A stretch of 23,664 nt of DNA, taken from positions 1 through 23,664 of the forward strand of contig NIVC01005174.1 of the NCBI GenBank assembly GCA_002269645.1, given 5' to 3'. Source of the stretch: Macrostomum lignano (taxonomy: Eukaryota). The notes under the pieces were generated by a model. The model worked only from the letters and a program-made list of their open reading frames with translations, was not told where the DNA came from and made no database searches. The position numbers and the translations under genes are program-made. Below are positions 1 to 23,664 of this stretch, piece after piece. Positions within the stretch are counted from its first letter, which is position 1, and each line of letters begins with the position of its first letter.

Positions 1-352
1 CCCCCATCTAACCATCACGATAGCTTTTTTCTGCAATCGCCCGAGAGACCAACTAACGACGAGATTGTAAGTGTGAGAGAATGTGCGGCGTTACCACAAG
101 GTCTATGGCTCTACCAGGGACCTCTACAATTTATTATCATAGATGGATAAACAAATATCCAGGAATTCGCGGTTGTCCATGGCCCAGACTAAGATAGCTT
201 TTAGCTTTGTACATCCGTTTGCTAGCATAGCACGACTAAAGCCATTTAATTTTTGTCAATCTAAGTGAGACAAAGGGTAAAAAAGATATTTGTAAAAAAG
301 CTATCTATCTATCTTAGTATACTATGTTAGTGTTTCAACTTCAATGCTTGGC

Positions 353-1239: not shown

Positions 1240-1464
1240 CCACTTTACCTTCAATTTTGAACAAAGTCGAATTTCGATTCAAACGATATGAGGACAAAAG
1301 CTACATGCAACCGATACGATGCAACCACATATAGCACTGGATTGTCTCAATCGAAGGTCTTGTAAGCTTGAATTGGATTCGACTTTGATAGGATAATTTC
1401 ACAACTTAATATGGCATATAATAAAAGCCACACCCTAACAGTTTACCAGAGCCACTGGTTGAAG

Positions 1465-2499: not shown

Positions 2500-2536
2500 G
2501 CAGCTTGATTGAGACTTAGTTGATGGACTGACGTTT

Positions 2537-2690
2537 GGGTTTGGTGGCTGAGTATCATGAGGCTTTGGTGGCTGAGTATCATATGGGTTTGGTGGCTGAG
2601 TATCATATGGGTTTGGTGGCTGAGATCATATGGGTTTGGTGGCTGAGATCATATGGGTTTGGTGGCTGAGATCATATGGGTTTGGTGGCT
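2537..2690 (+). repeat. Minisatellite, 23-24-bp unit (gggtttggtggctgag(t)atcatat), ~6.5 copies
   Basis: Directly visible tandem repeat starting ~40 bp after the stop codon. Confidence 0.95.
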
Positions 2691-3417
2691 GCTCATGTAT
2701 GTCTTGCATGGCTTGCATTGCATGTCTTGCTCATGTACGTGGTTCTGTTATTGAAGTTCAACTGGTGAAGCTCTGATATTAACAAATATTTTACCGTCAA
2801 TAGAAGTTCTAAAAATATTTTCAGCTTTCTTCTAAAGCAATTTTCATTTTATGTCACACGTATTTTTAAAAACCTGTCCCTACGAATTCTTTACCTTAAT
2901 AGAACAGGATATTTTATTATTCAAAAATTTTCTCACCTTGTTACTTTCTCGCATTGTCTAAAAAGGCCGAAATGTTGCAAGTTCATAAGATTTTTAATCA
3001 TAATCCAGCTTATGATTTAATAACATGTTTTGTAATAGTTGTGTTAATAACTATTAGTTTATTAACTTAGCATATAGCACCCTGTTTCGCGAGCGTGTTC
3101 GCACAAGATCTTTAGTTTTTTTGCGTTTCTCTATCTATCTATTCTGGCATATCTAAAATTATTTGATTAATTTCATAATATTAACTGTGCTATATGCTTC
3201 GCACAATTTGAAGAGTTGCTTAAACAAATTAAATAAGACAGTGTCATAAATTTTCCCTAGATTGTGTGCAGTCTGCTTTAAACTTTGACCACTTAAAATA
3301 TAGCTTTTTATAATTGCATCGGTAGCTATTCAATGAGTTGAGCTACATGCATATGCAAGGACTACTAGACGAAGTGTTCCTAGTGGTCCTTGTGCATATG
3401 ATGCAGATAATCACAGA

Positions 3418-3688
3418 TAATTGATTACACCTGCCCCAGTGGGCCAGATGTGCAACCGACAGCTCAGCCGCAGCTTTTCGCGGCACATCTGAAGGCTCGT
3501 ACGGTCGCCACACACCCTCAATTGCCCCAGCTAATTCTGGCACCCATTTTACAGCTGGGTGAACTGAAGCAATGCAGGTTGAGTTAGGAGTCTTGCTCAA
3601 GGACACAAATTGATCCGAGTGGGTCGAGAATCGAACCCCAGACCTTTCAGTCGTGAGTCCAACGCTCTAACCACTAGGCTACAACCCC
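3418..3688 (-). mobile_element. tRNA-derived SINE with CORE-like central domain, copy 1 (small internal deletion)
   Basis: Minus strand starts GGGGTTGTAGCCTAGTGG (A box) ... GGTTCGATTC (B box), then tgtgtccttgagcaag...cagttcacccagctgtaaaatggg, which resembles the MIR/CORE consensus. Homologous copies at 14723 and 17757. Confidence 0.85.
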
Positions 3689-4419
3689 TAGTCTAGGCTA
3701 CATGTACTCGTATTGGGCATTATGATTTATTTCATGTACCTGCGCAAATGGGACTTCAAGATGTTTACGACAAATGCTAGGGAAAAGTTAAAAAGTACAT
3801 GCATGCACAATTCTACACATAAAGTACAAACCTTAAATACGCTTGATGCACTGACGTAATCATCCTCACACATGTAGAATAGGCTACTGCACACCATGCA
3901 GGATTCCGGCCAGCAACTATATACAATAAGCAATTCCATAAGAAAGCATATGTAAATATTGTAGATGCAAGGCATCGTGCATAATACGTACTGGATACCT
4001 ATACCCACCTATACATGTACGTATAGTATTGCATATTTTGCTACTTAATGTATATAGCTATAATAGCATGACAAAATGCTTCTTTCGACATGTATACCTC
4101 AATCGAGTAACAATCTTTAGTTTTTTATTTCGGCTTCAGATAAGATCTACAGTTGAGATTGAGCACTCTGGTGTATTCTGCATCCAGCTCGTGTCTGATT
4201 GCATTCAACCAAAAATCGCAAGCCCACACGGCGGTTTGCGGCAAAAGGGTGTTTGTTTTTCACTACTCGAGCCCTGCACAGAAATGCAGGGGCCAATGTG
4301 TGTGCCAATTAGAAGCAACCGAGGACGCGACTTGAGTATCGACGTACTAGTGTACACTGTAAATAGTCTGACAATAATGTTGTAGTTCTCCCCGAACATA
4401 ACTAGAAGCATAGAGGCGG

Positions 4420-5170
4420 CTCAGCGTGCTTGGCTACGCCGACGATCTCGCTCTACTGCTGTCTAACTTTGACCGTCGAGGGCGCCCGCGCCAGCTGGAG
4501 AGTTGTGGCGAGTGTCGGTCTGGTGATGGTCAACAACACACAGAAGAGTCATCGATCGTGCTCGTGCTGGACGACTTTGATCGAGGCTGCAATTTTCTGC
4601 CGAGGCGCTGACGGACAGGTGACTAAGCTTCCGTGCTGTCAGCAGTTCGTCTACCTCGGCGGTCAGGTGCCGAAGTGCGCGAGGACCTGAGACGTCGCCG
4701 TGGACAACTTGCCTGGGCTGCCTTCCGCTCCGTTTTTCTTAGCGGTGATCGAGACTGTCCTGTTGTATAACGCCGAGACCTGGACGCTGACAGATTCGCT
4801 CGAACAGCGGGTCGACGACGCCGCCTTCAAGATCGGCTATACGAGCGAGTCACCAATAATGCGGCACTCTATCATCGTACCACCCGCGAACTGTCGCGCC
4901 GTCGGCGACTCCAGCTGGCAGGCCATTTTGTACTGCCCGCAACCGTTGCAGGAGGTGCTGAGCTGCAGACGCTGCAGGCACTACTGCACCCTACCAAAGC
5001 AGGCCATTAGCCGGAATACTTCAGCATGGAATAATGGAATAGGACTTCGGCTGGGGCAGGGCCCGCCCGCACCCTCCAGGGCAGGCTTTTCGTCGACTGC
5101 CTGCTGGCTGATTATGGCGCCCCGGACACTGCCGGCGATGCGGCCTACGTTCGCGCCCAGGCCTTAAAAC
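4420..5170 (+). mobile_element. 5'-truncated, frameshifted non-LTR retrotransposon (RTE-like) reverse transcriptase and C-terminal fragment
   Basis: Motifs spread over different frames: LGYADDLAL (RT catalytic YADD), GLVMVN, FVYLGG, LAWAAF, AVIETVLLYNAETWTL, RRRRLQLAGH. Several frameshifts and an internal deletion. Confidence 0.85.
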
Positions 5171-5940
5171 GCATCCCGTGACGTTGTCTGTTTGACTGAC
5201 TATAACAACGTATTTTGTTGTGCTGTTGTATAGAGTTCCTGTTATAACGGCTTTAATGGCCTATATCAGGAGTCAGGCCTGGAGTATAATTTCCAAAGCG
5301 CGATACACACGGAAATCTAGAAAAGAAAGTTTTGCAATTTTTTAAGGAAACCTAACCTATGGTACTAACAAGAAATCGCAAAAAATGTTTCTATTTTATA
5401 AAAGTTCTTTGTAGATTTATTCATCTGATTTAAGTATCAATTTTGCATATTGTTAGCATACTAGCATAAAGGAAAATTCGACACTAACATCGTTTGTCCT
5501 TACTATTTGTTATAACCCCTTTTACAAGCGTACTGGCCTATTTTAAATCATATTATTTATGAATAACGTGACTGCGCTGCGAATTGCGCGCTTATGAACC
5601 TCTGCCCACCGAACTTTGTGAACTGTTTTGTTACGTGGCTATCATATGGTTATCGTTTAAATAGAAGAGAACTTTTTGTCTGTTTTTCCTGTTTCTTCAG
5701 TCCATTTTATCGTTTTACTTGTATCGAAATTGTCGGAAGACTGCACTGTACTCAGAGCTAGAACAGTTTGGTTCATGAATATTTTCTTTTATTAATTTAG
5801 CCTACTTTCTAAAAATTAGAAAACTTGCTCAAAGTAACTCGCAATCACTAAAAAAACTTTAAAATTTCCAAAACAGTTATTGTTTCTTGGAACGCCAGCT
5901 GCAATCTCATCCTAAAGTGCAAACTGTCATTTGTCATGAA

Positions 5941-6090
5941 ATGCCACCTAATCCCCTAAAGAACAAGCAATCCACTACAGAAATGAAACAGTCATCAACA
6001 AAACTTGATGAGATTGATAATGGATATCATGGAGAAAGCCTTCCTTGCCAAGTATCATCTGTTGCAGATTCATCTATGCCACATGTTAAT
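5941..6090 (+). CDS. Candidate first coding exon of the MFSD2-like gene (speculative)
   Basis: ATG at 5941, 50 open codons, then aat|gtaagc (phase-0 donor) compatible with the phase-0 acceptor at 8765. It is AT-richer than the other exons and has no recognisable homology. Confidence 0.3.
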
Positions 6091-6450
6091 GTAAGCTGAA
6101 TAAGCATAATATTGCTTAGATATATATTAGGCCTACTTATACAGATGTTTGTATGTTGTTAAATATTTTTATAGGCCTATTCAATAAGCAATTGCAGAAA
6201 ATGCAGTTTGAATTAAAGTATAATTTTTGTCTATCCTGTAATTTATTATTATTAGGCTGGGTCTATATTATTTATTTGCACTAGGCCTAAATATAACTAA
6301 ACTATGAATTTAAGATATAGGCCCCTAGTATATATTTTGGGGATAAAGATATCATACCATATAATATATTGGCTATATAACAAAGTGGCCATAGCATAGG
6401 ACTGGAATATCCACATGACAAAATGGCCATATATAACATAAATAAAAAAG

Positions 6451-7619
6451 CAAATCTGAGGGTTATCCCAGAAATAATGGGAAAAACCAGTATAGAGGCT
6501 GACTGTGATTTTTGAATTTGATGCAACATGTGTCATAAATAGAAAAAAATCCAACAGTCATTTTGCTTTTTAAATGGGATAAAAATATCAATTTATTCAA
6601 GTTTTGTCTACAAATAAAACAAGGGATAAGGGGTAGAGTTACACCCTGGTTGCAGATTGTGCAGTGGTATATCCTGGAACAAGAACCCTAGCTCATCTAA
6701 ATGTATACCAATATACACCAAAAACAAAAAATTCCCTAAAATATACACCAAAAATTTCTTCTAAAAAGGTCATTCAGTTTTTATAAGTAGAATTTTCTAA
6801 GAAAGGCTTTCATACAAAGTCTTTTAAAATGAAATGAAATAATATAAAATTTCATTTAAAATAAAAATAAATAAAATGAATATTTTCATTTTAAACAAAT
6901 CTAAATTATACTTACAGAAATAATGATGCAAAATTGACACTCTTAGCAATAATTTATACTAATTTTATTTATTGTTTATTTCAAAGAAGCAAAAAGTTTA
7001 TCACTGACTTTCTAGACTATACCAATTTTCCTTTACTTTATGTAAAAACATTAATTTTATTTATTTTATGCATTGTATACACCGGTTGTATACACCAAGG
7101 ACTTAGGGTTGTTGTTTTGTATGCCGGAAAGTTCCAGCATATATGCATGCCATCTACAACCTAGAGTTACATCAAGTCGAGGGGTCTGCAAAGTTGGTCA
7201 CACAACATTGCCATTGCCTTTGACTGATGACTTTTCAACAAAGTCATCCCTCAGCCTATAGCTTGGAGCTATTCTGCTTCTGCTTCTGCTTTTTTCAAGG
7301 GCTTATGTGCTCTTTTTTGTTTCTTTTTAGCTTTTTTGTTTGCTTTTGTTTTTGAATCAATGGTTCTGATTAAACATTGAAAGTTTAGTCTATGGCCAGC
7401 ATAGTAGTCTTGAATTGGTATAACTTTACCCCCTACCCCTTGTTATATTTATAGGCATAACTTTTGAATTAATTGATATTTTTACCCCATTTAAATATTA
7501 AAAAGCAAACAGCCATTGGATTCTTTTTTACTTATGACACAAATTGCATCAAATTCAAATATCACAGTCAGCCTCTGTATTAGTTTTTCCCACTATTTTG
7601 GGATAACCCTCATATTTTG
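6451..7619. mobile_element. Degenerate foldback / inverted-repeat element (arms ~6451-6642 and ~7419-7619, spacer ~775 bp)
   Basis: The arms are reverse complements with scattered mismatches (e.g. gagggttatccc...gaggctgactgtgat...gaatttgatgcaa vs ttgcatcaaattc...atcacagtcagcctc...gggataaccctc). The ORF-track peptides at 6297(-) and 7516(+) are correspondingly similar. Confidence 0.7.
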
Positions 7620-8765
7620 GCAAAAAATTATCTTTAGAATATGCTATCAGTTTAAAAATTATTTTAATAGAAGTGTTTTTTATATGCATTTCTGTTTTAT
7701 TTTATTTTTGTTCTTTGTCCTTGCATTTGCTTTCAGTTTTTTATTTGGATTTCTAAATATACTTAACTGCATTTTCTTCCATTTGCAACTTTATAGCTTG
7801 GATTTAGTACTTTGTGATAAATTTATTGGAATGCTGACCATTTTATCTAAAGCTAGCCATTTTAATGAACAATTTATTGAGATTGATCAAGATTAATCCA
7901 GCTTTGGCAAAGAGGGAAAGGTTTTTTGTTATAGAAAATAGTCAAAATAAAAGTACAAACTTTAAAAAGACATGCTTTTTATGCTATAGCAATTTTATTA
8001 TTTGATTAGTGAAATATTGTTTAATTAAATGCCATTTTGTTATGGCTGAATTTCAAAGTACAATTTAAAATTGGATCTGACCACACTGTTATCCCTAATC
8101 TATTGATTGCACTTTGCAAGTACACTATAGTTTAGAACACTATATATACATGTCATGCATAAAAATATTTAGTGTATGTCTTGTACCAAAATATTGAACA
8201 TATATACCAAAAGCTAAAAAATCACTTTGTATGCCAACATGTATGCCAAATTTCCTGATTGTACCCTAGAAATTTCCAAAGTACATGCCTTCTTCCTGAC
8301 TATGGCATGTACATGCAGTAATAGCTACTAGCTAAGTCGTGAGTTTTTTTAATTTACAAACTGCAGATATGTGCAAGGCAGTCAATGAATAATTTTTTAA
8401 GAAGCTACAATCACCAAATGGGTATATTTGCAATTATATGTTATAAGTAGCCTATTTTTTGCCTAACCGGTCACTTTTAACATCTATGTAAACAAAAAAT
8501 TCACTTTTTCCAAATCATCTTTTGCCAAAAATTCCTTTGCCAAAATTGGCCACACCCTTGGTCATTCTGGTCATAACATGATTTGTGATCTGAGGGCATG
8601 ATAAATGCAAAATGTAAATGTAAAAGGTATAAATGTAAAAACCTGAAGCACTGATTCATCAAACTGAGAAATTCCTCTCAATGTGGAATTTCGCCTTAAT
8701 GACCAATGATTTAATGCTGTATTGTTGACAACAAGGCTGTATAAACCTTGAACTACCCCTGGCAG

Positions 8766-9221
8766 ACTTTGGATCCCCTGATCTGCTCGGACCAGTCGGT
8801 CATCTCACCAGACGATGCTGCAGTCGCAGACGCCAGCAGTGATGGCGGCAGCGGGCCGGCCCTGAGCACCGGCCGCCGGGTTCTCTATGGCCTGGCTGCT
8901 CCGCCATCTGCCATGTGCGGCAACATCTTGGGCTTCCTAATGTCCGTCTACCTGCTGGAGGTGGCCAAGCTGACCCCTGGCCTGGTGCTCACCATAACAT
9001 TCACCGGCCGGTTCTGGGACGCCGTCTCCGATCCCATTGTCGGCTATCTGGTGTCCCGGACTCGAACTCGATTCGGGAAATGCCGGCCCTGGGTGTTGGG
9101 CTCGGCGCCGTTCTGCGGCCTGGCCTTTTTCCTGTTCTTTAACACTCCCTCCTGGCAGTCGCTGTATGCGAGATTCGCCTACTATTTTATCGTGTACCTA
9201 GGATTCTGCACCTTCTTGACG
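8766..9221 (+). CDS. MFSD2: MFSD2-family (MFS glycoside-pentoside-hexuronide type) transporter, coding exon
   Basis: GRFWDAVSDPIVGYLVSRTRTRFGKCRPWVLGS matches the MFSD2A GRAWDAITDP...TRWGRLMPW region. Donor acg|gtgagt at 9221/9222 (phase 0). Probable acceptor ctggcag at 8765. An in-frame TAA at 8742 means the ATG lies in an upstream exon. Confidence 0.9.
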
Positions 9222-9258
9222 GTGAGTGGTTAACTTTTGACCAGCTCTAGAACCCTCG

Positions 9259-10418
9259 GTTGCTGGGCCAGCCTCTCAGATCCTCCGTTGCTGGCCAGCC
9301 TCCCACATCCTCAGTTGCTGGCCAGCCTCCCACATCCTCAGTTGCTGGGCCAGCCTCCCAGATCCCCAGTTGCTGGGCCAGCCTCCCAGATCCTCATTAC
9401 TGGGCCAGCCTCCCAGATCCTCAGTTGCTAAACCAGCCTCCCAGATCCTCAGTTGCTGGACCAGCCTTCCAAATCCTCAGTTGCTAAACCAGCCTCCCAG
9501 ATCCTCAGTTGCTAAACCAGCCTCCCAGATCCTCAGTTGCTGGGCCAGCCTCCCAGATCCTCAGTTGCTAAACCAGCCTCCCAGATCCTCAGTTGCTGGG
9601 CCAGCCTCCCAGATCCTCAGTTGCTGGGCCAGCCTCTCAGATCCTCCGTTGCTGGCGAGCTTCCCAGATCCTCAGTTGCTGGGCCAGCCTTCCAGATCCT
9701 CAGTTGCTGAACCAGCCTCCCAGATCCCCAGTTGCTGGGCCAGCCTCCCAGATCCTCAGTTGCTGGGCCAGCCTCTCAGATCCTCCGTTGCTGGCCAGCT
9801 TCCCAGATCCTCAGTTGCTGGGTCAGCCTCTCAGATCCTCCGTTGCTGGGTCAGCCTCCTAGATCTTCAGTTGCTGTGCCAGCCTCCCAGATCCTCATTA
9901 CTGGGCCAGCCTCCCAGATCCCCAGTTGCTGGGCCAGCCTCCCAGATCCTCAGTTGCTGGGCCAGCCTCCCAGATCCCCAGTTGCTGGGCCAGCCTCCCA
10001 GATCCTCATTACTGGGCCAGCCTCCCAGATCCCCAGTTGCTGGGCCAGCCTCCCAGATCCTCAGTTGCTGGGCCAGCCTCCCAGATCCCCAGTTGCTGGG
10101 CCAGCCTCCCAGATCCTCAGTTACTGGGCCAGCCTCTCAGATCCTCCGTTGCTGGCCAGCTTCCCAGATCCTCAGTTGCTGGGTCAGCTTCCCACATCCT
10201 CAGTTGCTGGGCCAGCCTCCCAGATCCCCAGTTGCTGGGCCAGCCTCCCAGATCCTCATTACTGGGCCAGCCTCCCAGATCCTCAGTTGCTAAACCAGCC
10301 TCCCAGATCCTCAGTTGCTGGACCAGCCTTCCAGATCCTCAGTTGCTAAACCAGCCTCCCAGATCCTCAGTTGCTAAACAAGCCTCCCAGATCCTCAGTT
10401 GCTGAACCAGCCTCCCAG
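9259..10418 (+). repeat. 28-bp minisatellite array 1 (gctgggccagcctcccagatcctcagtt), ~42 units, filling an MFSD2 intron
   Basis: Directly visible tandem array inside the 9222-10494 intron. Confidence 0.97.
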
Positions 10419-10494
10419 CTTCTGAGGCTTATAACTAAGCTTGTGCCTCTAAGCTACGCAACTCATCCCATTCTATCACGGTATTCGCTGGCAG

Positions 10495-10573
10495 ATGTAC
10501 CACATCCCCTACACGTCGATGACCATGCTGATATCGAACAGGCCAGCTGACAGGGACGCTGCTACAACTCTGC
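10495..10573 (+). CDS. MFSD2: MFSD2-like coding exon (79 nt)
   Basis: cag|ATGTAC... encodes MYHIPYTSMTMLISNRPADRDAATTL, matching MFSD2A FHVPYSALTMFIS...ERDSATAY. Donor c|gtaagt at 10573/10574 (phase 1). Confidence 0.92.
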
Positions 10574-11364
10574 GTAAGTTGGGGTGCCAATTAAATTTTT
10601 TAATTTCATATAAAAAGTTTCAAGGCGCAGTCTCTGCTTTGAATTGTTTCAATTCTCACACAAAAACACAGATTAGTCACTCATGTCGTGCATTTAGCTA
10701 GCCTCCTTTTTTGTTGTTTTGCCTAGTTAGTAACTAACTAAATATATGCATTGTATGCAAGAGTTTTATTAATGAAAATCTCTTATCTGCGCAGTTTTAT
10801 AAAAGAAACTGCGTAGCATATTCTATTATTTCATTCATACTCATAAAATTTTTAGTTTGTACTTTCATTTCTCTCATTCTCAGGCTTCCAAGTTTCCTCA
10901 CTCAATTTTGCTTAACAACCGCCACTCTCTGCTCCCTGCGTACGCTCTCCTCCTCGTCCTTAGCATCCTGTACTGGCATCCTCCCTCTCACTCCACTCCC
11001 CCTGTCTCTGTCTTCTCAAGTGCAAACCAGTCTCCCCATCATCTGGGTTCGCGCGTACCTTACCCTGACGGTTTGCCCTGTCTGCCTACTGTAGTGCCAG
11101 TGCGGCCACACCCTTCAACTGCCTCATCTGGTCCCATACTTATTTGCCTCCCGCCTCTCTAATCCCGCTGGGGTTCTCCCACGCAGCTTGTCTTCTGCCG
11201 GCTGTAGCGATTAAACCCATCTTATTCTCTATTCTGGGAGGTGAAAACGGTCACACCCGATTTAAGCGCCATTTAAAAAAAAAATTACTATTGAGCCTGC
11301 TCACTGTGCTATGTAATATGCTATGCAATATGCTTGGCGCTTGCTCTTCTCAGATTATACTCTT

Positions 11365-11369
11365 GTCTA

Positions 11370-11432
<63 letters not shown>

Positions 11433-11435
11433 TAT

Positions 11436-11466
<31 letters not shown>

Positions 11467-11559
11467 GTTAGTGTCTGTCTGTCTGTCTGTCTTAGTGTCT
11501 GTCTGTCTGTCTTATTGTCTGTCTGTCTGTCTGTCTGTCTTAGTGTCTGTCTGTCTTAT

Positions 11560-11616
<57 letters not shown>

Positions 11617-11619
11617 TAT

Positions 11620-11650
<31 letters not shown>

Positions 11651-11717
11651 GTTAGTGTCTGTCTTATTGTCTGTCTGTCTGTCTTATTGTCTGTCTGTTT
11701 GTCTGTTTGTCTGTCTA

Positions 11718-11812
<95 letters not shown>

Positions 11813-11815
11813 TAT

Positions 11816-11860
<45 letters not shown>

Positions 11861-11903
11861 TAGTGTCTGTCTGTCTGTCTTATTGTCTGTCTGTCTGTCT
11901 TAT

Positions 11904-11952
<49 letters not shown>

Positions 11953-11999
11953 TAGTGTCTGTCTGTTTGTCTGTCTGTCTTATTGTCTGTCTGTCTTAT

Positions 12000-12040
<41 letters not shown>

Positions 12041-12126
12041 TAGTGTCTGTCTGTCTGTCTGTCTGTCTGTCCTAGTGTCTGTCTTAGTGTCTGTCTGTCT
12101 GTCTGTCCTAGTGTCTGTCTGTATCT
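11365..12126 (+). repeat. Compound (GTCT)n microsatellite, ~760 bp, intronic
   Basis: GTCT runs interrupted by TATT, TAGT, GTTT and GTGT tetramers. Confidence 0.98.
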
Positions 12127-12594
12127 GCCACTGTATTTCTTCCTCTCTTCGCCTCTTCTCCAACAGTATTGAGTTGGCCGCTCACTGCTTGCTTGTTCGA
12201 TTTGCTGTATTGATCGGGCCTGGCAAAGTTGTTGGTTTAACTTTCTCAGCTCTATAAATAGAAATGGAAAGTGTAAGCCGCACATCTTCAGCTGTTGATT
12301 ACAGCTGGATTTTCTCTCACGTGACTCGCCTTGGTACTTAGGGAAACTTGTTTTTCCCTAGCCAATAGTTCGCAGCTGCTTAGCAATCAGAGGGTCAGAA
12401 ACATGTTATGTTCACTAGCTCCGTGCACACTTTACTTGGCGTGTCATTCTATACGTTTTCTAAACTACTGTATATGGACTGAAGGAAGATAACCGCCGCC
12501 TTTTCCTACTAAAAGTAACGTTATAAAGTTTATGGTTTTTTAATTGCAATGAAAGCTTAATACAAGCTCAATATCTTTGTAATAATTGTATGTT

Positions 12595-12708
12595 CCAGAC
12601 TATTCCAGACTATTCCCAAGGATGCTTAGAGACTATTCCCAAGGCTAATCAGAGACTATTCCCAAAGCTACTCAGAGACTATTCCCAAGGCTACTCAGAG
12701 ACTATTCC
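12595..12708 (+). repeat. 23-bp minisatellite (cagagactattcccaaggctact), ~4-5 copies, intronic
   Basis: Directly visible; ends ~65 bp before the exon acceptor at 12774. Confidence 0.9.
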
Positions 12709-12774
12709 CTCAAGTTACCTAGCCTATATGGTTCAATGACTAACCAAACTGTTCCTTCTGCCTCTCACAATCAG

Positions 12775-13894
12775 GCATGATATTCGAGATGCTGGGCACC
12801 CTGTGCGGAGTGATGACCTTCACCTTCATCACCCAGCACGGGCAGGACAGCTGCCAATTAGCATCCATCGGCAACCTTAGCCTGGCAGCCGGAGACCCCG
12901 AGCCGTCGCCAGTCCCAGCCGACGGCTCACCAGAGGTGGCGCGCTACCGGCTTGGCGGTACAATCATCGCCTCAGTTGTGTGCGCCTGCGGCTTAGTTGG
13001 CTTCGTCGGCACCAGGGAGGTCCCGGCCGCCGCCGTAGAATCTCCGTCCGTGACGTTGACATCGCCGCCTATTGAGCGTCACCGTCAGCAGACTGTTGCC
13101 GCCTGCTGCTACGGCATGCTGTCGGCATTCAAGCGCTGCCTGCGTCACCGATCCTACCGTCAGCTGATGCTGACCTTCATGCTGAGCTCGCTGGCCATAC
13201 AGACTGTGCAGAACAGCCTGGCACTGTACACTATCTACAGTTTGCAGATGAAGCCGCATCTGAAGTTCGCCATCGCCATAGTCATGTCCATGGCTATTCT
13301 GGCCACCCCGCTGGTGTTCTTAGCTATCAAGCGTGTGGGCAAGAAGCGCGTATTCTATGTTGGCCTGTTTCTCATCCTGCCCGTGTGCTTGTCCGCCACG
13401 TTCTGCCCGGCCGACGACCGGTTTGTACGCTCTATTACGTTACCATGCTGGTTGCCGGCTGCTTTGTCAGCGTGAATATGCTGCTGCCGTGGGTTATGCT
13501 GCCAGACGTTATCGACGATTACACAGCCGCCACTGGCCGGTCTAGCGATCAGGACTCCGCCACGTTCTACAGTCTGTACGTGTTCTTCAATAAATTCGCT
13601 GTGGGCATCAGCACCGCCTGTCTGCAGCTGGCCCTGCACCTCACCGGCTATCGGCAGTCTGAGGCCTGCTCGCAGTCTGCCGCCGTTGCCATGGCATTGC
13701 GCTGCATTATTGGGCCGCTACCGATGCTGCTAGTAGCGGCCGCGTTTCTGGCTCTGTTCCGGTATCCCATCACGCCTGAGTACAGAGCTCAACTGGACAG
13801 GCGGTTGGCCGAGGCTCGCTTGAACGGGGCCGCCTGCGGCACTGAGATGAGTCAGCAGACTAGCAAGCTGGATGGCGATGCCAAGGATGCTTGA
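12775..13894 (+). CDS. MFSD2: MFSD2-like last coding exon, with one apparent 1-bp deficit near 13428
   Basis: tcag|GC completes the phase-1 codon to give R-MIFEMLGT (MFSD2A RMTVEVLGT). Later motifs are LLPWVMLPDVIDD, FYSLYVFFNKFAVG and LALHLTGY. The exon is 1120 nt and needs one more base for the two ORF-track frames to join. Confidence 0.9.
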
Positions 13895-14246: not shown

Positions 14247-14722
14247 ACGTTTGTATTGGGATCGTGGACCCTGCGGTTTAGGCTACTGGTTTATTATACA
14301 ATGCTCTTTAGTTATAAAGAATCAATCCCATGAATCCCATAAAACCCCAAACTACGAGTACTTCACTATAATTCACAAAACTGACATTTCCGCGACTGGA
14401 AACTACTGTTAGTAGTGTAAAAAACAACTTCCATCCCGTTCCTAAATTATGCCCTACTACAATATGTTAATTTAGAAAGAAGTGCTGTTTAACGATTTAC
14501 GTTAATCGTACTTGCGTGGCATGATGCTTTGAAAAGACTTGTAGATAGTTCGGCCAAGAGTTGAGATTTTGATAGACAAAAAATCAATTAATTTACTTCG
14601 ATAATTCACAAAGCGAATAAATTTACAATCCGACTGGCGCTTTGAAGAATTTTTTCATGAATTTAAACCATATGCAGAACAAGCACTTGAAGTAAAATTA
14701 ATAGATTTTTGCTTCATCAATA

Positions 14723-14975
14723 CGACAGCTCAGCCGCAGCTATTGCGCGGCGCATCTGAAGGCTGCGTACGGCGGTTCAGTCCAAGGACTGGGGGTCGCC
14801 ACACACCCTCAATTACCCCAGCTAATGCTGGCACCCATTTTACAGCTGGGTGAACTGAAGCAATGCAGAGTTAAGTGTCTTGCTCAAGGACACAAATTGG
14901 TCCGAGTGGGTCGAGAATCGAACCCCCGACCTTTCAGTCGCGAGCCTGACGCTGTAACCACTATACTACAAGCCC
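14723..14975 (-). mobile_element. CORE-like tRNA-SINE, copy 2 (head intact, tail end missing)
   Basis: Same head and core as 3418-3688 (GGGCTTGTAGTATAGTGG ... GGTTCGATTC ... tgtgtccttgagcaagacacttaac). Confidence 0.88.
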
Positions 14976-15919
14976 TTGTACTTATACAATAAATTAACAT
15001 CAACAAAAGTTTGCAAGTCAAATCAAAAATGGAATTTTCCAAACCTGTCGGATTTTATGCTTGCATCACTAAGTTTTTGAACACCACTCGTGTCTGGTAA
15101 AATAAAATTCTCAAATTTGTTCTGCTATTTCGCACAGCAGGTGCCAATAGTCTACACAGAGACTTGCGCATTGTACTACTAGCAGTAGGCATTGAGTGGC
15201 GGTAGCTAGCATGCTATCGCTATGCATTTATGACAAACATGCTTAGTTACTGGAGATGTTTAGCTGTCTACTTAAGTTTTATATGATCAAATGCAATGCA
15301 ATTTACTGCTTAATTGGCTGCTCATAAGACTAGTTTCTTCAATCATTCGAAATGTTTGTCCACGTGTTGCGAGATTTTAGGCAGGATTGGTTTTTTGTCA
15401 TTTTTATAAATTAATTGTCAAATTTTCTGCAACTAGTTATATAAAATCCTGTTGTCTTTTTTCTTCTACAGTTCACTGAAGCTCCACTGAAGCAACGACC
15501 CTTAAACATTTTTCTAGCTATTCCCAATTTAACAATTTCAGCTCAAAACGGCAACTGCCCCCCTTTTTGTAGATTGGCATTTTTCCTTGTTTTAATCTTT
15601 TAGTTACTTATAAACACGAAATTCCTTTGTAAACCGAAACACCTGCCCAGTCTTTGTCTGTCTGGCAGGTTGCTACATATTATGCTAACTGATTAGATGT
15701 TCACTTTCTACTCTTAACTGTACACTAGCCAAGCTCGAATGCAATGTTATGAAATATATTTACAAAGCACAGCTAAAAATCTAATTGTTTTCTTTTTTGT
15801 TTCACATTGAAGCCGAATCTTCAGCCATTTGTTTCGGTCCTGTGTTCGTAGCTTGGCAATCCTTTGTTTTGGGGTATATTGCAGCTCATTGAAATTTCAT
15901 CTTCAATGTTCTGCATTTG

Positions 15920-16191
15920 AGATCTGGTGGCCCAGCAACTGAGGATCTGGGAGCCTGGTCCAGCAACTGAGGATCTGGGAGTGTGGCCTAGCAACTGAGG
16001 ATCTAGGAGTGTGGCCTACAACTGAGGATCTGGGAGGCTGGCCAGCAACTGAGGATCTGGGAGGCTGGCCCAGCAACTGAGGATCTGGGAGGCTGGCCCA
16101 GCAACTGAGGATCTGTGAGTGTGGCCCAGCAACTGAGGATCTGGGAAGCTGGCCCAGCAACAGAGGATCTGGGAGTGTGGCCCAGCAACTG
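15920..16191 (-). repeat. 28-bp minisatellite array 2 (same family as array 1, opposite orientation), ~9-10 units
   Basis: Units gaggatctgggaggctggcccagcaact and the variant ...gggagtgtggccc... Confidence 0.97.
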
Positions 16192-16625
16192 CCCGTCGGT
16201 AAATAATTGTCTCTCAAGGTGTCAAATGGCACATGAGAAACCGATAGAAATGAATGGAAAAAAAACTCGATTACTCGTAGTAACAAAAATGGGCATTGCA
16301 CAGTTGGAAGAATAGTAGATTTTGCCAGAAAAATTATTTCCTGCAGGGAAAAAAATCAGATTTTTGAGAGAATTGTTTGCACAATGATTGCATTCTACAC
16401 TATTGCTACTTGTGAAAAATTAGGTAGGCTGAATGGCACTTAACATTTTTTGCAAGTTATTTCTGGCTTGTCCGTTCCAGACGATAGATATCTCTTAGCA
16501 GAGCATGTCACTTCTGTTCTCCTGTCAGACTAGTATATCTTTGCGTACATGAAGCCATCTCACATCGAGAGTCTCGATTCGCCACCATGCATAGCTTACC
16601 ATAGCCGTCAGGAACAGATATACTA

Positions 16626-16848
16626 CACCTTTTCACGTTCAATTTTGAACAAAGTCCAGTTCTAAAAAAACTAGCGGAAATTCAATTCAGACAATTCCGA
16701 CTGGGGACAATTTTGTCTATGGCTAAACCTCGCTTCCGTAGCAGAATGTTTTGAACTGGGTTTGTTGCCCCAGTCTGAATTGTCTGAATTGAATTTCCGC
16801 TAGTTTTTTTAGAACTGGACTTTGTTCAAAATTGAACGTGAAAAGGTG
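16626..16848. mobile_element. MITE, 223 bp, ~81-bp terminal inverted repeats, TA target-site duplication (Tc1/mariner-type)
   Basis: 16626-16706 is the reverse complement of 16768-16848 with one mismatch. TA lies at 16624-16625 and 16849-16850. No ORF. Confidence 0.92.
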
Positions 16849-17756
16849 TAATGGGTGGCGCGCCATAGGTAACTATAAACCTCGACATGGACCACAGATT
16901 CTATAAACACAGAATCTGTGACATAGACTAAACTTTAAATTTGTAGTTACTTAAGCGCCACCGGGTATGTATGTGGCTATAGATTAAAACATGGGCAAGC
17001 CGGTAGAAATTAGTGAGGTTGAGGCAGGGTTAGCACTGCATGCTGAGGCGTGAGGCCGGAGCAAGCGACAGAAGCCTCTGCAGAAATTTCACTGCGGGTC
17101 CTGTAGAGAGCGGCTTTTCCTGCATGAGAAGTGGAGGCTCCAACGATTGTTCCTGATGACTACAGACAGGCAGCTGCAGCTTTTAGATCAATAAGTTGTC
17201 AACCAAGTTCTTGGCAGTAGCTTCAGCCGTAAGAACTGCGCGGCTGACAATGGTAATAATCTGCTTCAGTCTGCTCCTGAGTTGCTGCTGCAGTCGCTCA
17301 CACTAATGAGGCAGGCACAAGAGGAGATACGCAGTGAGGATAGGTAGGGGAATGAGAATCTGGCTGGTTGTTCGTGTTGTGAAGTAAATAGAGACTTTAT
17401 TCAAGTAGCTGTGTGAGAGTCTAGTGTAGTTCCCCCTCAGGAATATCAGTAACATTTTGCACGGCCAGTTCTTACTCGTGAGTTCGCGCCGGGTTGAAGT
17501 CGCACTTTTACACTTTTTCTTCGACTGCGATTGCATCATTGATGCAAAAGTCAATGGAGAATTGCTCAAAGCGACAGAATGTTAGTTTTGTTTTTTGTTT
17601 TGACCTGCATGTAATTCTTTGTTTTCTTCCGCTGCATTGACTGTTACAAGAGCTCCATGAAATGCTTTGGCTTTTTTCATTAATATGCTGCCCGTCTAAT
17701 AATGAAAAGAATGCTCATAAATTTAACTCGTTCTACTGAGAAATTTCACAACAGCT

Positions 17757-17985
17757 AATAATTAAATAATAATACTTGATTACACCTGCCCTAATATGCA
17801 GATGTGCAACCGACAGCTCAGCCGCAGCTATTGCGCGGTGCATCTGAAGGCTGCGTACGGCTGTTCAGTCCAAGGACTGGGGGGTCGCCACACACACCCT
17901 CAATTACCCCAGCTAATGCTGGCACCCATTTTACAGCTGGGTGAACTGAGGCAATGCACAGGTAAGTGTCTTGCTCAAGGTCACA
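17757..17985 (-). mobile_element. CORE-like SINE, copy 3 (tRNA head absent, (TAT)-type tail present)
   Basis: Core and 3' part match copies 1 and 2. Similarity stops at tgtgaccttgagcaag. The 9-mer acaacagct occurs at 17748-17756 and 18010-18018. Confidence 0.88.
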
Positions 17986-18331
17986 GGTTGGATTCCCTAT
18001 TCCACTGGAACAACAGCTGCGAAGGCTGTGTATTTTTTTTATTAGAGGCAGGGGGGTTGTGTGCACCCTGGCGCACTTTAAGCGACATAGGCACACAACC
18101 GGCGAGAGGCATTGCTGCCCATTCCGCCGACTCCCCTGAGCAGGCATACAAGCGCGCGGATACGTACGCAGGCACACACTCACACAGGAGTGTACAGCGG
18201 CCCTAACTTTATATTATCGTTAGGCATGTACACTTCACTGTGCCTTGGGGGGTTGGCTCTCAAGGCCGTTAATTGCACGAGCAGAGCCAAGCCGAGATTC
18301 CAATTCAGCCCCAAATTATGTGACAGCACTT

Positions 18332-18387
18332 GGAATCGAGTCTGGGTCGCTGGGACACCAGAGCCTGCGCTAGACCGCTGGGCTGTG
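18332..18387 (-). mobile_element. Degenerate tRNA-like (SINE head) fragment of a different family
   Basis: Minus strand CAGCCCAGCGGTCTAGCGC (A-box-like) ... GACTCGATTCC (B-box-like). No good cloverleaf. Confidence 0.35.
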
Positions 18388-19274
18388 TAAGTGAAGTTTA
18401 AGTCTCAACTCAGTGTCGCGGTAGTCTTGTATTCGACTCGTCAAATGAGTAGCGTATAGCAGATCGTCAGCCGAGATAGAGCTACACTAATAAAGGAGGA
18501 ATGCACGCGGAATTTACCTAAATGGACACAGCAACCTGGGGTGAGAGGATAGTGAAGTGCTTGACTGGTGAGAGGACTCTAAATCCAACCTTAACTCTGA
18601 TCTGCACGCGGTAGGATGTTGAGTATTGAGTGTTGAGACTAAATGCAGACAGGGGGGGGGTAAAAAAACAAAACAATGACTTTCATGCAAAAGAGAGAAG
18701 CAGGGCAAAGTCAAGACAGAAAAACCAGCCTGTAGACCAGAATTAAAATACAGTAGCTACTGGGGAGACTGAGCAAGAAGCATTTGAGCTGCAGACCTCA
18801 CTGCATGACACGCACAACGCAGCAGTATTACTTAACGTAAAAAGGAAGTCGCAACTGGTCTCGTAAATAATATGCATCTTTACCACAAATTAGAAAATCA
18901 CAACAACGAGTTCATCTGGCATATTTTACGAGCGTAATTACCAGATTGCTTTACATAATACAGAACAATAGCCATCATCAGTGAGAATAATTTTCGCGGC
19001 CCCTGCAGTCAAGCTAATGAAGTAATAAAGGAGAACAATACGAGTACATTAGTGTAATCATAGTCAATACACGAGTGCAAATTCAAATAAAAAAGCGTCA
19101 TAGTTGGAGATACCGCAGTACAAAAGTTGCGAGCTAGAACAAACGAATCAAATATATCAAAATAAAAAAGTAACAGGTCGCCATCTTACCTAACCCTACC
19201 TGATATCCACGTCTGCTTGAAAGTTTTCGATGTTTTGAAACTTTCAGAAGGGAACTGAATCACTGAGAGCTCAC

Positions 19275-19845
19275 CAATCAGCTGGAAGAAGCGAATCTCG
19301 CAGATGGTCAGGATCAGTCCAGTCAGGGTCTGAATCCGCAGCACTCTGCCGCTAAGGCCGCAGCTCACATTGAAGACGGACTCGGAAGCATTGGTGAAGT
19401 AGCTGGCGCACTGAACTTCGTCCATCAGCAGCTGGAAGAAGCGAATCTCGCAGATGGTCAGGATCAGTCCAGTCAGGGTCTGAATCCGCAGCACTCTGCC
19501 GCTAAGGCCGCAGCTCACATTGAAGACGGACTCGGAAGCATTGGTGAAGTAGCTGGCGCACTGAACTTCGTCCATCAGCAGCTGGAAGTTCGCCAGCCTC
19601 TCCGGGCAGCAGTCGGCTCGATTCCACAGGGTGACCAAGTCGACTCGAACTGAGGAGTTGAACTCGGCCTGCCACCAGGCTGCCGTGTCTGAGGCACCTG
19701 TAGCTGAGCAGCTGAGGGAGCCCCAGTCCTGCGCTGTGCTGCCATCGATGGCCTTGTCGCAGGTGGCGTATGTCGAATATTCGAGCTGTGCTGGCAGGAG
19801 TCTGGCCACAGTGGCTGCACAACTGGCTGCGCCGTCAGCTGCGGC
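19275..19845 (-). CDS. F-type lectin (FTP / F5-8 type C) domain exon, with an apparent 1-bp deficit near 19782 and an internal 50-aa duplication
   Basis: Motifs AIDG, WWQAEF, VTLWNRADCCPERL and LTICEI. Acceptor tttctcaattgcag| at 19846 and donor g|gtgagc at 19274. The phase-2 junction with the signal exon puts the start of this exon in the PQLTAQPVVQPLWPDSCQHSS frame. Confidence 0.85.
19279..19588. repeat. Perfect 150-bp tandem duplication (19279-19428, 19429-19578) with 10-bp junction microhomology CAGCTGGAAG
   Basis: The two copies read identical by eye. CAGCTGGAAG occurs at 19279, 19429 and 19579. Confidence 0.95.
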
Positions 19846-19902
19846 CTGCAATTGAGAAATGCTAGTGGGGCTGGCTCTCTCCGACTTCCAGGTTTACACT
19901 CT

Positions 19903-19970
19903 GCATTAGACACCTCGGCAGCGCCTTGGCTCGAAACCAGAAATTACAGGTTCGAATCCGCGCCGTTTGA
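19903..19970 (+). other. tRNA-like fragment (pseudo-tRNA or SINE head), antisense within lectin intron 1
   Basis: GGTTCGAATCC B box at ~19949-19959, preceded by an anticodon-like hairpin TTGG-CTCGAAA-CCAG. The A box and acceptor stem are poor. Confidence 0.4.
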
Positions 19971-20266
19971 CGCAAAGAACTGCGTTGACAAAGGCAAACG
20001 AATATTTGAGACACAAACACAGAGTATGTACATGCACGATGCAAAAGTGTGTGCTTGTGCACGAGGGAATTGTGTTCTCAAGGGCAGCCGAACTAAAAAT
20101 TCTTAAACAACCGGCAGCTGTCTGACTGTCACCAGGGGCTTCAAATCTGTTCCATTTATGTGAATGGAACACAGGAAAAACGCCCAAAACAAACCTACTA
20201 ATGCAGATTTTACATAGCTACAACCCAGCAAGCAGTTGGCACAGCCCGCACACGTTTGGCACTCAC

Positions 20267-20307
20267 CAAACAGCTGGTAATATTAAAGCTATCAATGTAA
20301 ACTTCAT
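20267..20307 (-). CDS. Signal-peptide exon of the F-type lectin gene
   Basis: ATG at 20307, MKFTLIALILPAV, then tg|gtgagt (canonical phase-2 donor). Splicing to 19845 gives MKFTLIALILPAVWPQLTA-QPVV, a plausible signal peptide. Too short for the ORF track. Confidence 0.8.
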
Positions 20308-20657
20308 GTGATTTGAAATTATCTATGCAAGCTTAAAAATCTAAAATTCAATCTCTCGGCAAATCCATCATCACAGCGAGCAGTGCAGTGAATAAATAAT
20401 ATTCTCTAAATTCAGAAAACCAGCCACTTCCAGCTCAGCTTTCTTCGAGGGTGCTGATTGGTCCGGGCCATCAAGGTTCCGGAAAGTCAGGGTAAAAAGC
20501 TTGTAGTTTGAATTTTGCTTTGCTAGCTCGTACTAATCAGTAGCAGTAGAAGACTTTGGAGAAACAATTAAAAAAATTGATTTGTTATTCTGCGTCAGGA
20601 TGCTCCCCAAGAGCTCATGTATTTTTAACCAAAATTAGGCCATCAAATAAATTGTAA

Positions 20658-21685
20658 GAGGATCTGTGAGTGTGGCCCAGCAACTGAGGATCTGGGAAGC
20701 TGGCCCAGCAACAGAGGATCTGGGAGTGTGGCCCAGCAACTGAGGATCTGGGAGGCTGGCCCAGCAACTGAGGATCTGGGAGTGTGGCCCAGCAACTGAG
20801 GATCTGGGAGGCTGGTCCAGCAACTGAGGATCTGGGAGTGTGGCCCAGCAACTGAGGATCTGGGAGGCTGGCCCAGCAACTGAGGATCTGGGAGTGTGGC
20901 CCAGCAACAGAGGATCTGGGAGTGTGGCCCAGCAACTGAGGATCTGGGAGGCTGGCCCAGCAACTGAGGATCTGGGAGTGTGGCCCAGCAACTGAGGATC
21001 TGGGAGGCTGGCAGCAACTGAGGATCTGGGAGTGTGGCCCAGCAACTGAGGATCTGGGAGGCTGGCCCAGCAACTGAGGATCTGGGAGTGTGGCCCAGCA
21101 ACTGAGGATCTGGGAGGCTGGCCCAGCAACTGAGGATCTGGGAGTGTGGCCAGCAACTGAGGATCTGGGAGTGTGGCCCACAACTGGGAGGATCTAGGAG
21201 TGTGGCCTACAACTGAGGATCTGGGAGTGTGGCCTACAACTGAGGATCTGGGAGGCTGGCCCAGCAACTGAGGATCTGGGAGGCTGGCCCAGCAACTGAG
21301 GATCTGGGAGGCTGGCCCAGCAACTGAGGATCTGGGAGGCTGGCCCAGCAACTGAGGATCTGGGAGGCTGGCCCAGCAACTGAGGATCTGCGAGGCTGTT
21401 TCAGCAACTGAGGATCTGGGAGGCTGGCCCAGCAACTGAGGATCTGGGAGGCTGGCCCAGCAACTAAGGATCTGGGAGGCTGGTCCAGCAACTGAGGATC
21501 TGGGAGGCCGGCCCAGCAACTGAGGATCTGGGAGGCTCGCCCAGCAACTGAGGATCTGGGAGGCTGGCCCAGAAACTGAGGATCTGAAAGGCTGGCCCAG
21601 CAACTGAGGATCTGGGAGGCTCGCCCAGCAACTGAGGATCTGGGAGGCTGGCCCAACAACTGGGGATCTGGGAGGGCGGCCCAGC
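20658..21685 (-). repeat. 28-bp minisatellite array 3, ~37 units
   Basis: Same family and orientation as array 2. Confidence 0.97.
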
Positions 21686-22231
21686 TGCTTAAAATTTCTT
21701 TTTGCGAAGTTTTGAAATTAGTTTGGAGGTAATCACAGTAATTAAGTATCAATTTTTAGCAAGGCAAATTGCAAAACGTTTTTACAATAGGTATATTATT
21801 TGAGTGCATTATTAATAAGCAAGACACGCAAGCGGGAGAGTTAAGTTACAATGCAATCGATACAGTCGCAAGCCGGGATAAAAGACAGGGCCAATATTGA
21901 ATACGTAGCTCTTACGTATATGTGATTTAATTATAATTTAAAATAGGCTGAGAAATTGATACGTTTCTCAGTAATACGAGAAAAAAATTAATATTGGCCT
22001 AGCTGGCAATCTGCAGATTAATACAGTGCGCCAAAGTATTTTATTTACAGTCTAAAGGGTAGTTTGTTATGACTGCTAGACCATGAAGTGTTATTACACA
22101 GCAGGGGTGCAAAAATTGCAAGAATTACTCTCTCCTGCATGCTGTTTAACACAACGCTTCAATATCTACGGGAGATATCATAATGAATATTTCCGATGCA
22201 TTAAACTACGCATAAGAAATTGCCGCATGGT

Positions 22232-22550
22232 CGGAGACTCGAACTGGGGTCTGGGAATCTAGGAGGTCGGAGAATCGAACTCGGGACCTCGGAGGTCTGA
22301 GACTTGAATTGGGGATTTGAGAGGTCTGAGACTCGAACTCGGGACCTCAGAGGTCGGAGACTTGAACTGGGGTATGAGAATGAGAGGTCTGAGACTCGAA
22401 CTCGGAACCTCGGAGGCTTGAGACTTGAACTGGGAATATGAGAGGTTCCAAATGAGACTCGAACTCGGGACCTCAGAGGTTTGAAACTCGAACTCGGGAC
22501 CTCAGAGGTTTGAAACTCGAACTGGGGACCATAAATTCGGAGACTCAAAG
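22232..22550 (-). repeat. ~29-bp minisatellite with alternating A/B unit types, ~10 units, carrying GTTCRAnnC motifs
   Basis: Type A gagactcgaactcgggacctcagaggtct alternates with type B gagacttgaactgggg...gagaggtct. Confidence 0.85.
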
Positions 22551-22722
22551 TGAGGATCTGGGTGTTTAGAGTTCGGCGGCTTCAAGTCAGAGAATCCGAC
22601 CATTGTGACATGAAAAAGGCCCAAATGAAACGAATAACAATTAACCATTTAGTCAGCACATTACAAGCCTGCGAATTCAGCAGCTGGTAGGTAGAATTCC
22701 TACTACCAAATCTCAAAGCGAT

Positions 22723-23239
22723 TCACTGCCATGGCAGGCTTTCCACAGGCGACTGGAACACAAAGTCCGGCGGAACAGCGACTTGGCATGCGAGCGCATG
22801 ATCTTGTAGGCTCCAGCGATCGTGACCTCGGCTACTCCGGCAATGTCGCCGATCTCCTTCTTCTCTTTCTTGGTGTCGGAGGCCTGGCAGGCCATGTAGA
22901 TGGCTGCGGCGGCCACTGAGATGGGGCTCTTGCCAGCCACTTCGTCAATTTGCATGGCCTTCTCGGCGATGTGCGTGGCGGCCTTCTGGATGGCGATGTT
23001 GAGCTCCAGGTTGGAGCAGAATCGGGACATGAAGTCCGTAGTTGAGATGCCCTTCAAGTTGGTGTCCAGGGCTTTGGTGATCTTTCGGAAGGCCTTGCCA
23101 ATGTCGCGGCGGTTCGAATGGCTCACCGAGCAGACCTCCTTGAGGGTGCGCGGCACAGCCTCCTGGCGCAGGCCATGTACAGGCAGGCGCTGGCAATTGT
23201 CTCGTTGGCGCGGCCGCGGCACTGCTTCGAGTCGTACAC
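22723..23239 (-). CDS. GTF2B: General transcription factor IIB, last exon (173 codons once two 1-bp deficits at ~23168 and ~22772 are restored); upstream exons outside the window
   Basis: [36 protein letters not shown]...DFMSRFCSNL...GKSPISVAAAAIYMACQAS...EIGDIAGVAEVTI...LF-PPDFVFQSPVESLPWQ* matches the TFIIB cyclin repeats. Acceptor cccgcag| at 23240. 517 nt + 2 = 519 = 173 codons. Confidence 0.95.
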
Positions 23240-23242
23240 CTG

Positions 23243-23664
23243 CGGGTGGAAGGGCGATTCCTCAGTGGGTGGAAGGGCGATTCCCCAGTGGGAGGAAGGG
23301 CGATTCTCCAGTGGGAGGAAGGGCGATTCTCCAGTGGGTGGAAGGGCGATTCCCCAGTGGGTGGAAGGGCGATTCCACAGTGTGGAAGGGCGATTCTCCA
23401 GTGGGTGGAAGGGCGATTCTCCAGTGGGTGGAAGGGCGATTCTCCAGTGGGTGGAAGGGCGATTCTCCAGTGGGGGAAGGGCGATTCTTCAGTGGGAGGA
23501 AGGGCGATTCTCCAGTGGGTGGAAGGGCGATTCTCCAGTGGGGGGAAGGGCGATTCTTCAGTGGGAGGAAGGGCGATTCTCCAATGGTTGTAAGGGCGAT
23601 TCTCCAGTGGGAGGAAGGGCAATTCTCCAGTGGTTGTAAGGGCGATTCTCCAGTGGGAGGAAGG
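23243..23664 (+). repeat. 23-bp G-rich minisatellite (gggcgattctccagtgggtggaa), at least 18 units, in the TFIIB intron; runs off the window
   Basis: Directly visible tandem array. Confidence 0.97.

Follow-up and report, generated by a model that had tools for sequence, protein, structure and literature searches.

We analysed contig NIVC01005174.1 from the flatworm Macrostomum lignano over its whole length (23,664 bp, hereafter the window) and found that a 28-bp minisatellite is interrupted there by 4,466 bp of non-satellite DNA, called segment U below, which carries a copy of an F-type lectin gene. The same 85 bp of satellite, holding a combination of variants found nowhere else in the window, abuts U on both sides. 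Removal of U together with one copy of this block closes the satellite into a single in-register array, and U itself has none of the hallmarks of a transposon. The account that we favour, with moderate confidence, is a single insertion into a pre-existing array, in which three target units were duplicated during repair of the break; U would then be a newcomer to the satellite rather than part of an ancestral arrangement.

The two copies of the block are identical at 85 of 85 positions, as the first-pass annotation of the window had pointed out, and the match can be extended by 0 bp in either direction. The left copy closes the second of three satellite arrays in the window (array 2), with non-satellite DNA directly after it from position 16192 (CCCGTCGG...), and the right copy opens array 3, with non-satellite DNA directly before it, ending at 20657 (...AATTGTAA). 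Since the duplicate measures 3 x 28 + 1 bp, both breaks fall at the identical place in the unit, CAACT^G^A. Three substitutions within the block had been proposed as diagnostic, and their combination is indeed private to the two copies; singly, however, two of the three recur elsewhere, CAACAGAGG at 20905 and GGGAAGCTGG twice on the other strand of array 1 (9795 and 10156), leaving GATCTGTGAG as the one confined to the block. Among the 84 units of the three arrays, the units GGATCTGTGAGTGTGGCCCAGCAACTGA and GGATCTGGGAAGCTGGCCCAGCAACAGA, which are two thirds of the units in the block, occur only in these two copies, and the next-best 85-mers carry at least 3 mismatches and all lie within array 3. 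A rare 27-nt unit that the annotation had listed as shared between arrays 2 and 3, GGATCTAGGAGTGTGGCCTACAACTGA, was recovered at 15999 and 21190 only. An identity of 85 bp is by itself not exceptional in this minisatellite, since exact repeats of 102 bp (20714-20815 and 21020-21121, in array 3) and 144 bp (9328-9471 and 10190-10333, in array 1) exist, and these show recent multi-unit duplication within the two arrays. What goes beyond chance is the exact placement of both block copies at the two inner array edges. When the block and both junctions were folded as single strands, nothing rose above shuffled controls.

All three arrays consist of head-to-tail units, some of them variant, with a constant period of 28 bp; arrays 1, 2 and 3 hold 41.9, 9.5 and 36.9 copies, respectively, at 89-91% matches (Table 1). 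GTG-type units and the CCTAC unit variant are common to arrays 2 and 3 and absent from array 1. No flanking sequence is common to array 1 and the outer sides of arrays 2 and 3, and so there is no sign of the satellite travelling inside a common element. At their outer edges arrays 2 and 3 run out into degenerate units like natural array ends, whereas their inner edges are cut mid-unit through near-consensus units. With U and one block copy taken out, Tandem Repeats Finder reports a single array in register throughout (43.3 copies, 91% matches, score 1927). In this joined array the block (units GTG*, AGC*, GTG) provides the first three units of a zone of ~21 units in which GTG-type and GGC-type units alternate, and the 56-bp alternation passes unbroken over the joined junction. 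Arrays 2 and 3 fit one array split by insertion, and not two dispersed arrays that recombined later.

These edges also bear on a different history, in which U is ancestral and lay between two old arrays whose inner 85 bp were homogenised later by gene conversion or unequal exchange. Multi-unit exact repeats such as those of 102 and 144 bp do arise within these arrays, and, as the shared 27-nt unit (15999 and 21190) shows, the array lineage has seen duplication or exchange in the past. Yet a conversion tract would need boundaries that coincide to the base with the end of array 2 and the start of array 3, the inner edges have none of the degenerate units typical of natural array ends, and the block is in phase with the alternation of array 3, so that array 2 would be left with a stray fragment of that zone at its end. 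We regard such a history as unlikely. Under the insertion account, the identity of the copies, their private variants and their exact abutment on U are explained directly, because the insertion event itself made the duplication.

That an array was split, as the first-pass annotation had proposed, is thus borne out by the geometry; the circle that it had invoked as the agent is not. On that proposal an extrachromosomal circular DNA (eccDNA) molecule carrying U and satellite units would have integrated into the array by Campbell-type crossover, to which may be added gap repair from a satellite-flanked donor of U. A single crossover would leave direct repeats flanking U, the repeat exceeds a whole number of units by just 1 bp, and gene relocation via circular DNA is documented in other organisms (PMC7188851; PMC7450558). 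The circle would, however, already have to hold the exact 85 bp with its two private unit variants; it would then derive from the same site and presuppose the structure to be explained. An exchange between dispersed arrays, the other route that had been considered, makes the same demand on the incoming molecule, and recombination between non-identical arrays gives hybrid rather than identical flanks.

The distribution of the satellite argues in the same direction. We searched 211 kb, made up of eight loci around F-type-lectin genes or gene fragments and of L001, a part of the 148-kb contig NIVC01002407.1 that carries a second copy of the window's locus, and obtained 0 matches to the 28-mer even when 3 of 20 bases were allowed to differ; a metagenome scan for a 25-mer of the satellite also gave no matches. 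M. lignano holds a family of F-type-lectin genes, in which the closest paralogues of the lectin gene in U (74-76% identical) lie in the gene model P0126 and are known only from this read-through model. They form a direct tandem pair at another locus, as judged from the linker between them, which is homologous to positions 20486-20360 of the window, and this linker contains no satellite-derived sequence. A repeat-bounded gene duplication would show several members each bounded by the same repeat; none of the eight loci has a lectin paralogue bounded by the 28-mer. The suggestion that a dispersed minisatellite provided the recombination handles by which lectin genes move thus gains no support from these loci, and we find it improbable that a circle integrated here or that a donor with satellite flanks served as repair template.

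Two further observations concern these lectin loci. The ML2 models P0126 and P0001 are read-through chimeras in which a PP2C phosphatase and a nuclear-receptor ligand-binding domain are joined to a tandem pair of F-type-lectin copies. At L006 (NIVC01004621.1), just downstream of the F-type-lectin gene P0281, positions 14267-22500 form a tandem duplication that is almost perfect and has a 4,800-bp period; it has exact stretches of up to 1,187 bp and includes copies of one of the interspersed repeats found in U (family B).

U as a whole does not look like a known transposable element, having neither the termini nor the short fixed-length target duplication nor the mobility gene of one. A comparison of its first and last 300 bp in both orientations found no similarity, with no terminal inverted repeats and no long terminal repeats (LTRs); there is no poly(A) tail on U, and a Pfam scan of all its open reading frames (ORFs) of at least 60 aa returned the lectin domain only, with no mobility domain. 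What recurs in other loci is just sub-parts of U, namely an element resembling a miniature inverted-repeat transposable element (MITE) and two interspersed repeats (families A and B), and not U in its entirety. Bona fide MITE insertions differ from U in having terminal inverted repeats and target duplications of 8-10 bp, as seen in two elements of L001 that are not in the window: one of 864 bp (L001 12540-13403; terminal inverted repeat CAGTGTTGGGCA, 8-bp target duplication) and one of 1,028 bp (L001 14829-15856; terminal inverted repeats, target duplication of ~10 bp). Four other origins were considered and rejected: a retrocopy, as U keeps an intron and lacks a poly(A) tail; a Helitron, which has other termini, 5'-TC...CTRR-3' with a hairpin; an LTR- or TRIM-like (terminal-repeat retrotransposon in miniature) element whose terminal repeat would be the 85 bp, as these are continuous with the flanking arrays; and a tandem duplication of U together with the block and a subsequent exact deletion, which requires two coincident breakpoints.

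In the sequence of events that we propose, one array of ~43 units would have suffered a break, a foreign piece of 4.47 kb (the lectin gene copy, the MITE and two short interspersed repeats) would have been joined into it, and the repair would have duplicated three target units (84-85 bp), placing one copy on each side of the insert. This could have happened by either of two routes. The strand breaks may have been staggered by three units and the overhangs filled in; alternatively, a broken end may have been extended by three units on an out-of-register sister template, by synthesis-dependent strand annealing (SDSA) or template switching, before foreign DNA was captured. Out-of-register SDSA on the sister chromatid after a break is the accepted model of minisatellite length change, with gains of whole units (PMC2599865). 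The satellite would serve as a passive target and not as a vehicle. Tandem repeats account for 20% of the window and for 2-34% of the nine other loci, so that no special targeting is needed for an insertion to land in an array, the chance of which is about one in five.

Other proposals would give the satellite, or an enzyme acting on it, a more active part. It is conceivable, and in our opinion very doubtful, that the 28-bp minisatellite is a preferred landing site, where unit-phased breaks (CAACT^GA) take up free DNA, perhaps circles with genes on them, and whole units of the target become duplicated. If true, this would offer a transposon-independent relocation of genes such as lectins in a genome of which simple and tandem repeats make up 15% (PMC5730564). 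An unrecognised mobile element or enzyme, for example a repeat-specific retroelement endonuclease, might instead nick each unit, so that U was received by a unit-phased staggered cut. The position of both breaks at CAACT^G^A, three units apart, is consistent with this, and a remnant of a long interspersed nuclear element (LINE) reverse transcriptase and Gypsy elements lie nearby; against it, U has kept an intron and has no poly(A) tail or element termini, and a second example is lacking. We consider an enzyme of this kind highly unlikely.

Several points weigh against the insertion account that we prefer. The empty site is a reconstruction, and neither it nor a donor locus has been seen. To our knowledge, an 85-bp target duplication far exceeds that of any transposon. 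The route of repair is inferred only, and conversion can also yield multi-unit identity, given the 102- and 144-bp exact repeats inside the arrays. Random staggering would give a whole-unit duplicate in only ~1 in 10 cases, which hints at a register-dependent step that our scheme does not fully specify. Finally, accuracy at the fine scale is uncertain, since the window is a small Canu/Pilon contig of 23.6 kb with frame breaks in two genes.

This last point raises the question of an assembly artefact, in which the insert or the identity of the blocks would stem from mis-joining, or from Pilon polishing with multi-mapped reads, in a small redundant Canu contig. The assembly, Mlig_3_7 (GCA_002269645.1), was built from PacBio continuous long reads with Canu 1.4 followed by Pilon polishing, and it includes 180 Mb in redundant blocks that are at least 95% identical (PMC5730564). 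The window itself duplicates part of the 148-kb contig, with 99.1-99.6% identity between L001 and window positions 1-5557; this comparison covers L001, which stops ~10 kb before the site of array 2, U and array 3. Most of what separates the two copies of the locus consists of transposon insertions: L001 has the two MITEs described above and, beyond the point matching window position 5557, a Gypsy element. The frame breaks in two genes likewise lend some weight to an artefact. However, a chimeric join does not yield a loop, with the insert beginning directly behind the block and stopping directly in front of it, consensus errors reduce the identity of copies and do not create three shared substitutions, and a 4.5-kb insert is below typical long-read size, so that spanning reads are expected. 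An artefact of assembly or polishing is, in our judgement, not a likely source of the structure.

The lectin gene has its exons on the minus strand and so runs from array 3 towards array 2. In agreement with the first-pass annotation, U holds its upstream region, signal-peptide exon and domain exon. The domain gives matches to Pfam PF22633 (E = 3.2e-10; 40.9 bits, with the cut-off at 27.8) and, in the PDB, to 3cqo (FBP32, 5.5e-14), 2j1r (3.4e-08) and 1k12 (eel agglutinin, 2e-06), and 3,805 relatives were found in the representative library. The fucose-binding triad (His ... Arg-x-Asp-x4-Arg/Lys) is incomplete: in the alignment with FBP32 its histidine (CTHT) is replaced by alanine (CSAT), and NRADCCPERL, an instance of the NRxDCCxERL motif, is retained. 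In the gene as assembled, the reading frame changes close to the start of the domain, across a zone in which the paralogue P0126 stays in one frame. With the strong GTGAGT splice donor the product ends after 103 residues, so that the ORF is not intact, and protein searches found no annotated protein that corresponds to it. A perfect in-frame tandem duplication of 150 bp has also doubled the C-terminal half of the domain; its boundaries are those expected of slippage from one short direct repeat to another, unless the assembly is at fault here. This gene copy is probably defective; the frame breaks here and in the MFS gene described below may reflect either errors in the consensus or the decay of a redundant copy.

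Table 1. Satellite arrays, block copies, segment U and its contents, with positions in the window
Feature	Position	Strand	Remarks
Array 1	9254-10418	-	Inverted; fills most of intron 2 (9222-10494) of the MFS_2 gene; own unit variants
Array 2	15920-16191	+	Outer (left) edge degenerate; inner edge abrupt, mid-unit
Left block copy	16107-16191	+	GA, then units GTG*, AGC* and GTG (last without final A); 3 units + 1 bp
Segment U	16192-20657		Inserted; 4,466 bp, non-satellite
MITE-like palindromic element in U	16612-16852		Both arms match 1225-1268
Short interspersed repeat, family A, in U	17772-17985	+	Further copies at 14723-14894 and 3417-3607, and in L001, L003 and L005
Interspersed repeat, family B, in U	18031-18387		Copies 95-96% identical in L004 and L006
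F-type lectin domain exon	19186-19845	-	Acceptor at 19845; stop codon 19186-19188
In-frame 150-bp tandem duplication, perfect	19279-19588	-	50 aa, FQLLMDEV...ICEIRF, C-terminal half of domain; 10-bp microhomology CTTCCAGCTG at bounds
Frame-change zone	19774-19793	-	Domain start DSCQHSS in one frame, CDKAIDGS... in another
Putative signal-peptide exon	20267-20307	-	MKFTLIALILPAV...; GTGAGT splice donor follows
Upstream (promoter-side) region	20360-20486	-	Homologous to linker between tandem lectin copies of P0126
Right block copy	20658-20742	+	First units of array 3
Array 3	20658-21685	+	GTG/GGC alternating (56-bp) zone, then GGC-unit run, then degenerate outer edge

The remainder of the contig holds several other features. 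An ORF of 362 codons at 1411-2499 matches an M. lignano protein at 100%, the annotated version of which has 344 aa. ORFs at 4430-5167 contain the LINE-type reverse-transcriptase tail motif LLYNAETWTL and have no Pfam match at the thresholds used. The MFS_2 gene (5941-13894) has an annotated product of 461 aa with exons at 5941-6090, 8766-9221, 10495-10573 and 12775-13475; the annotation stops at 13475, and the MFS_2 profile goes on in another frame to 13894, which places the frame break at 13385-13475. On the minus strand, 22713-23222 encodes a TFIIB cyclin-repeat exon with at most 64% identity to any database protein, and no M. lignano protein is among the matches listed. The contig terminates within a 23-bp tandem array (23244-23664). 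Rfam and tRNA scans of the window gave no matches.

Taken alone, the locus is one structural variant with a probably defective gene copy, and satellite-driven gene mobilisation is not demonstrated by it. If U was indeed inserted as we propose, it would provide a clean natural case in which a minisatellite break led to a whole-unit gain together with the capture of several kb of genic DNA. In a flatworm that is rich in repeats and became polyploid recently, dispersed gene duplication would then be tied to the instability of minisatellites. At present the locus is best read as a one-off event in which a minisatellite received genic DNA, and recurrence of the pattern would raise its importance.

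How does this structure compare with known systems? As in transposon target-site duplication, a direct duplication of the target flanks the insert. Transposon target duplications are 2-10 bp long and are accompanied by element termini; here the duplication is 85 bp and termini are absent. In human minisatellite mutants, Jeffreys et al. 1994 reportedly described a flanking duplication around inserted repeats. The lectin in U resembles the F-type lectins FBP32 (3cqo) and eel agglutinin (1k12) in the matched domain and the conserved NRxDCCxERL motif, and differs from them in having CSAT for CTHT and, in the gene as assembled, a frame break and a 50-residue internal duplication. In the Sp185/333 clusters of the sea urchin (PMC5103432), genes for small secreted proteins likewise have the same simple repeat on both sides, their duplicated units measure 4.2-4.6 kb, and the repeats are proposed to promote duplication and deletion; there, however, many copies are each bounded by repeats, whereas here a single copy is bounded and eight other lectin-family loci are without the repeat. 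Insertional duplication through eccDNA, as described at cattle KIT, in yeast and in human (PMC7188851, PMC7450558), also brings a few kb of genic DNA to a new site, but in those cases without reliance on satellite homology and with circular permutation relative to the donor as the diagnostic signature. Minisatellite repair by SDSA, as at human MS32, CEB1 and MSY1 (PMC2599865, which cites the yeast model of Paques, Leung and Haber 1998), shares with the present case a break within an array, a gain of whole units and the retention of variants by the copied units. The difference is that the three-unit gain is interrupted here by 4.47 kb of unrelated, gene-bearing DNA, the capture of which lies outside the standard model.

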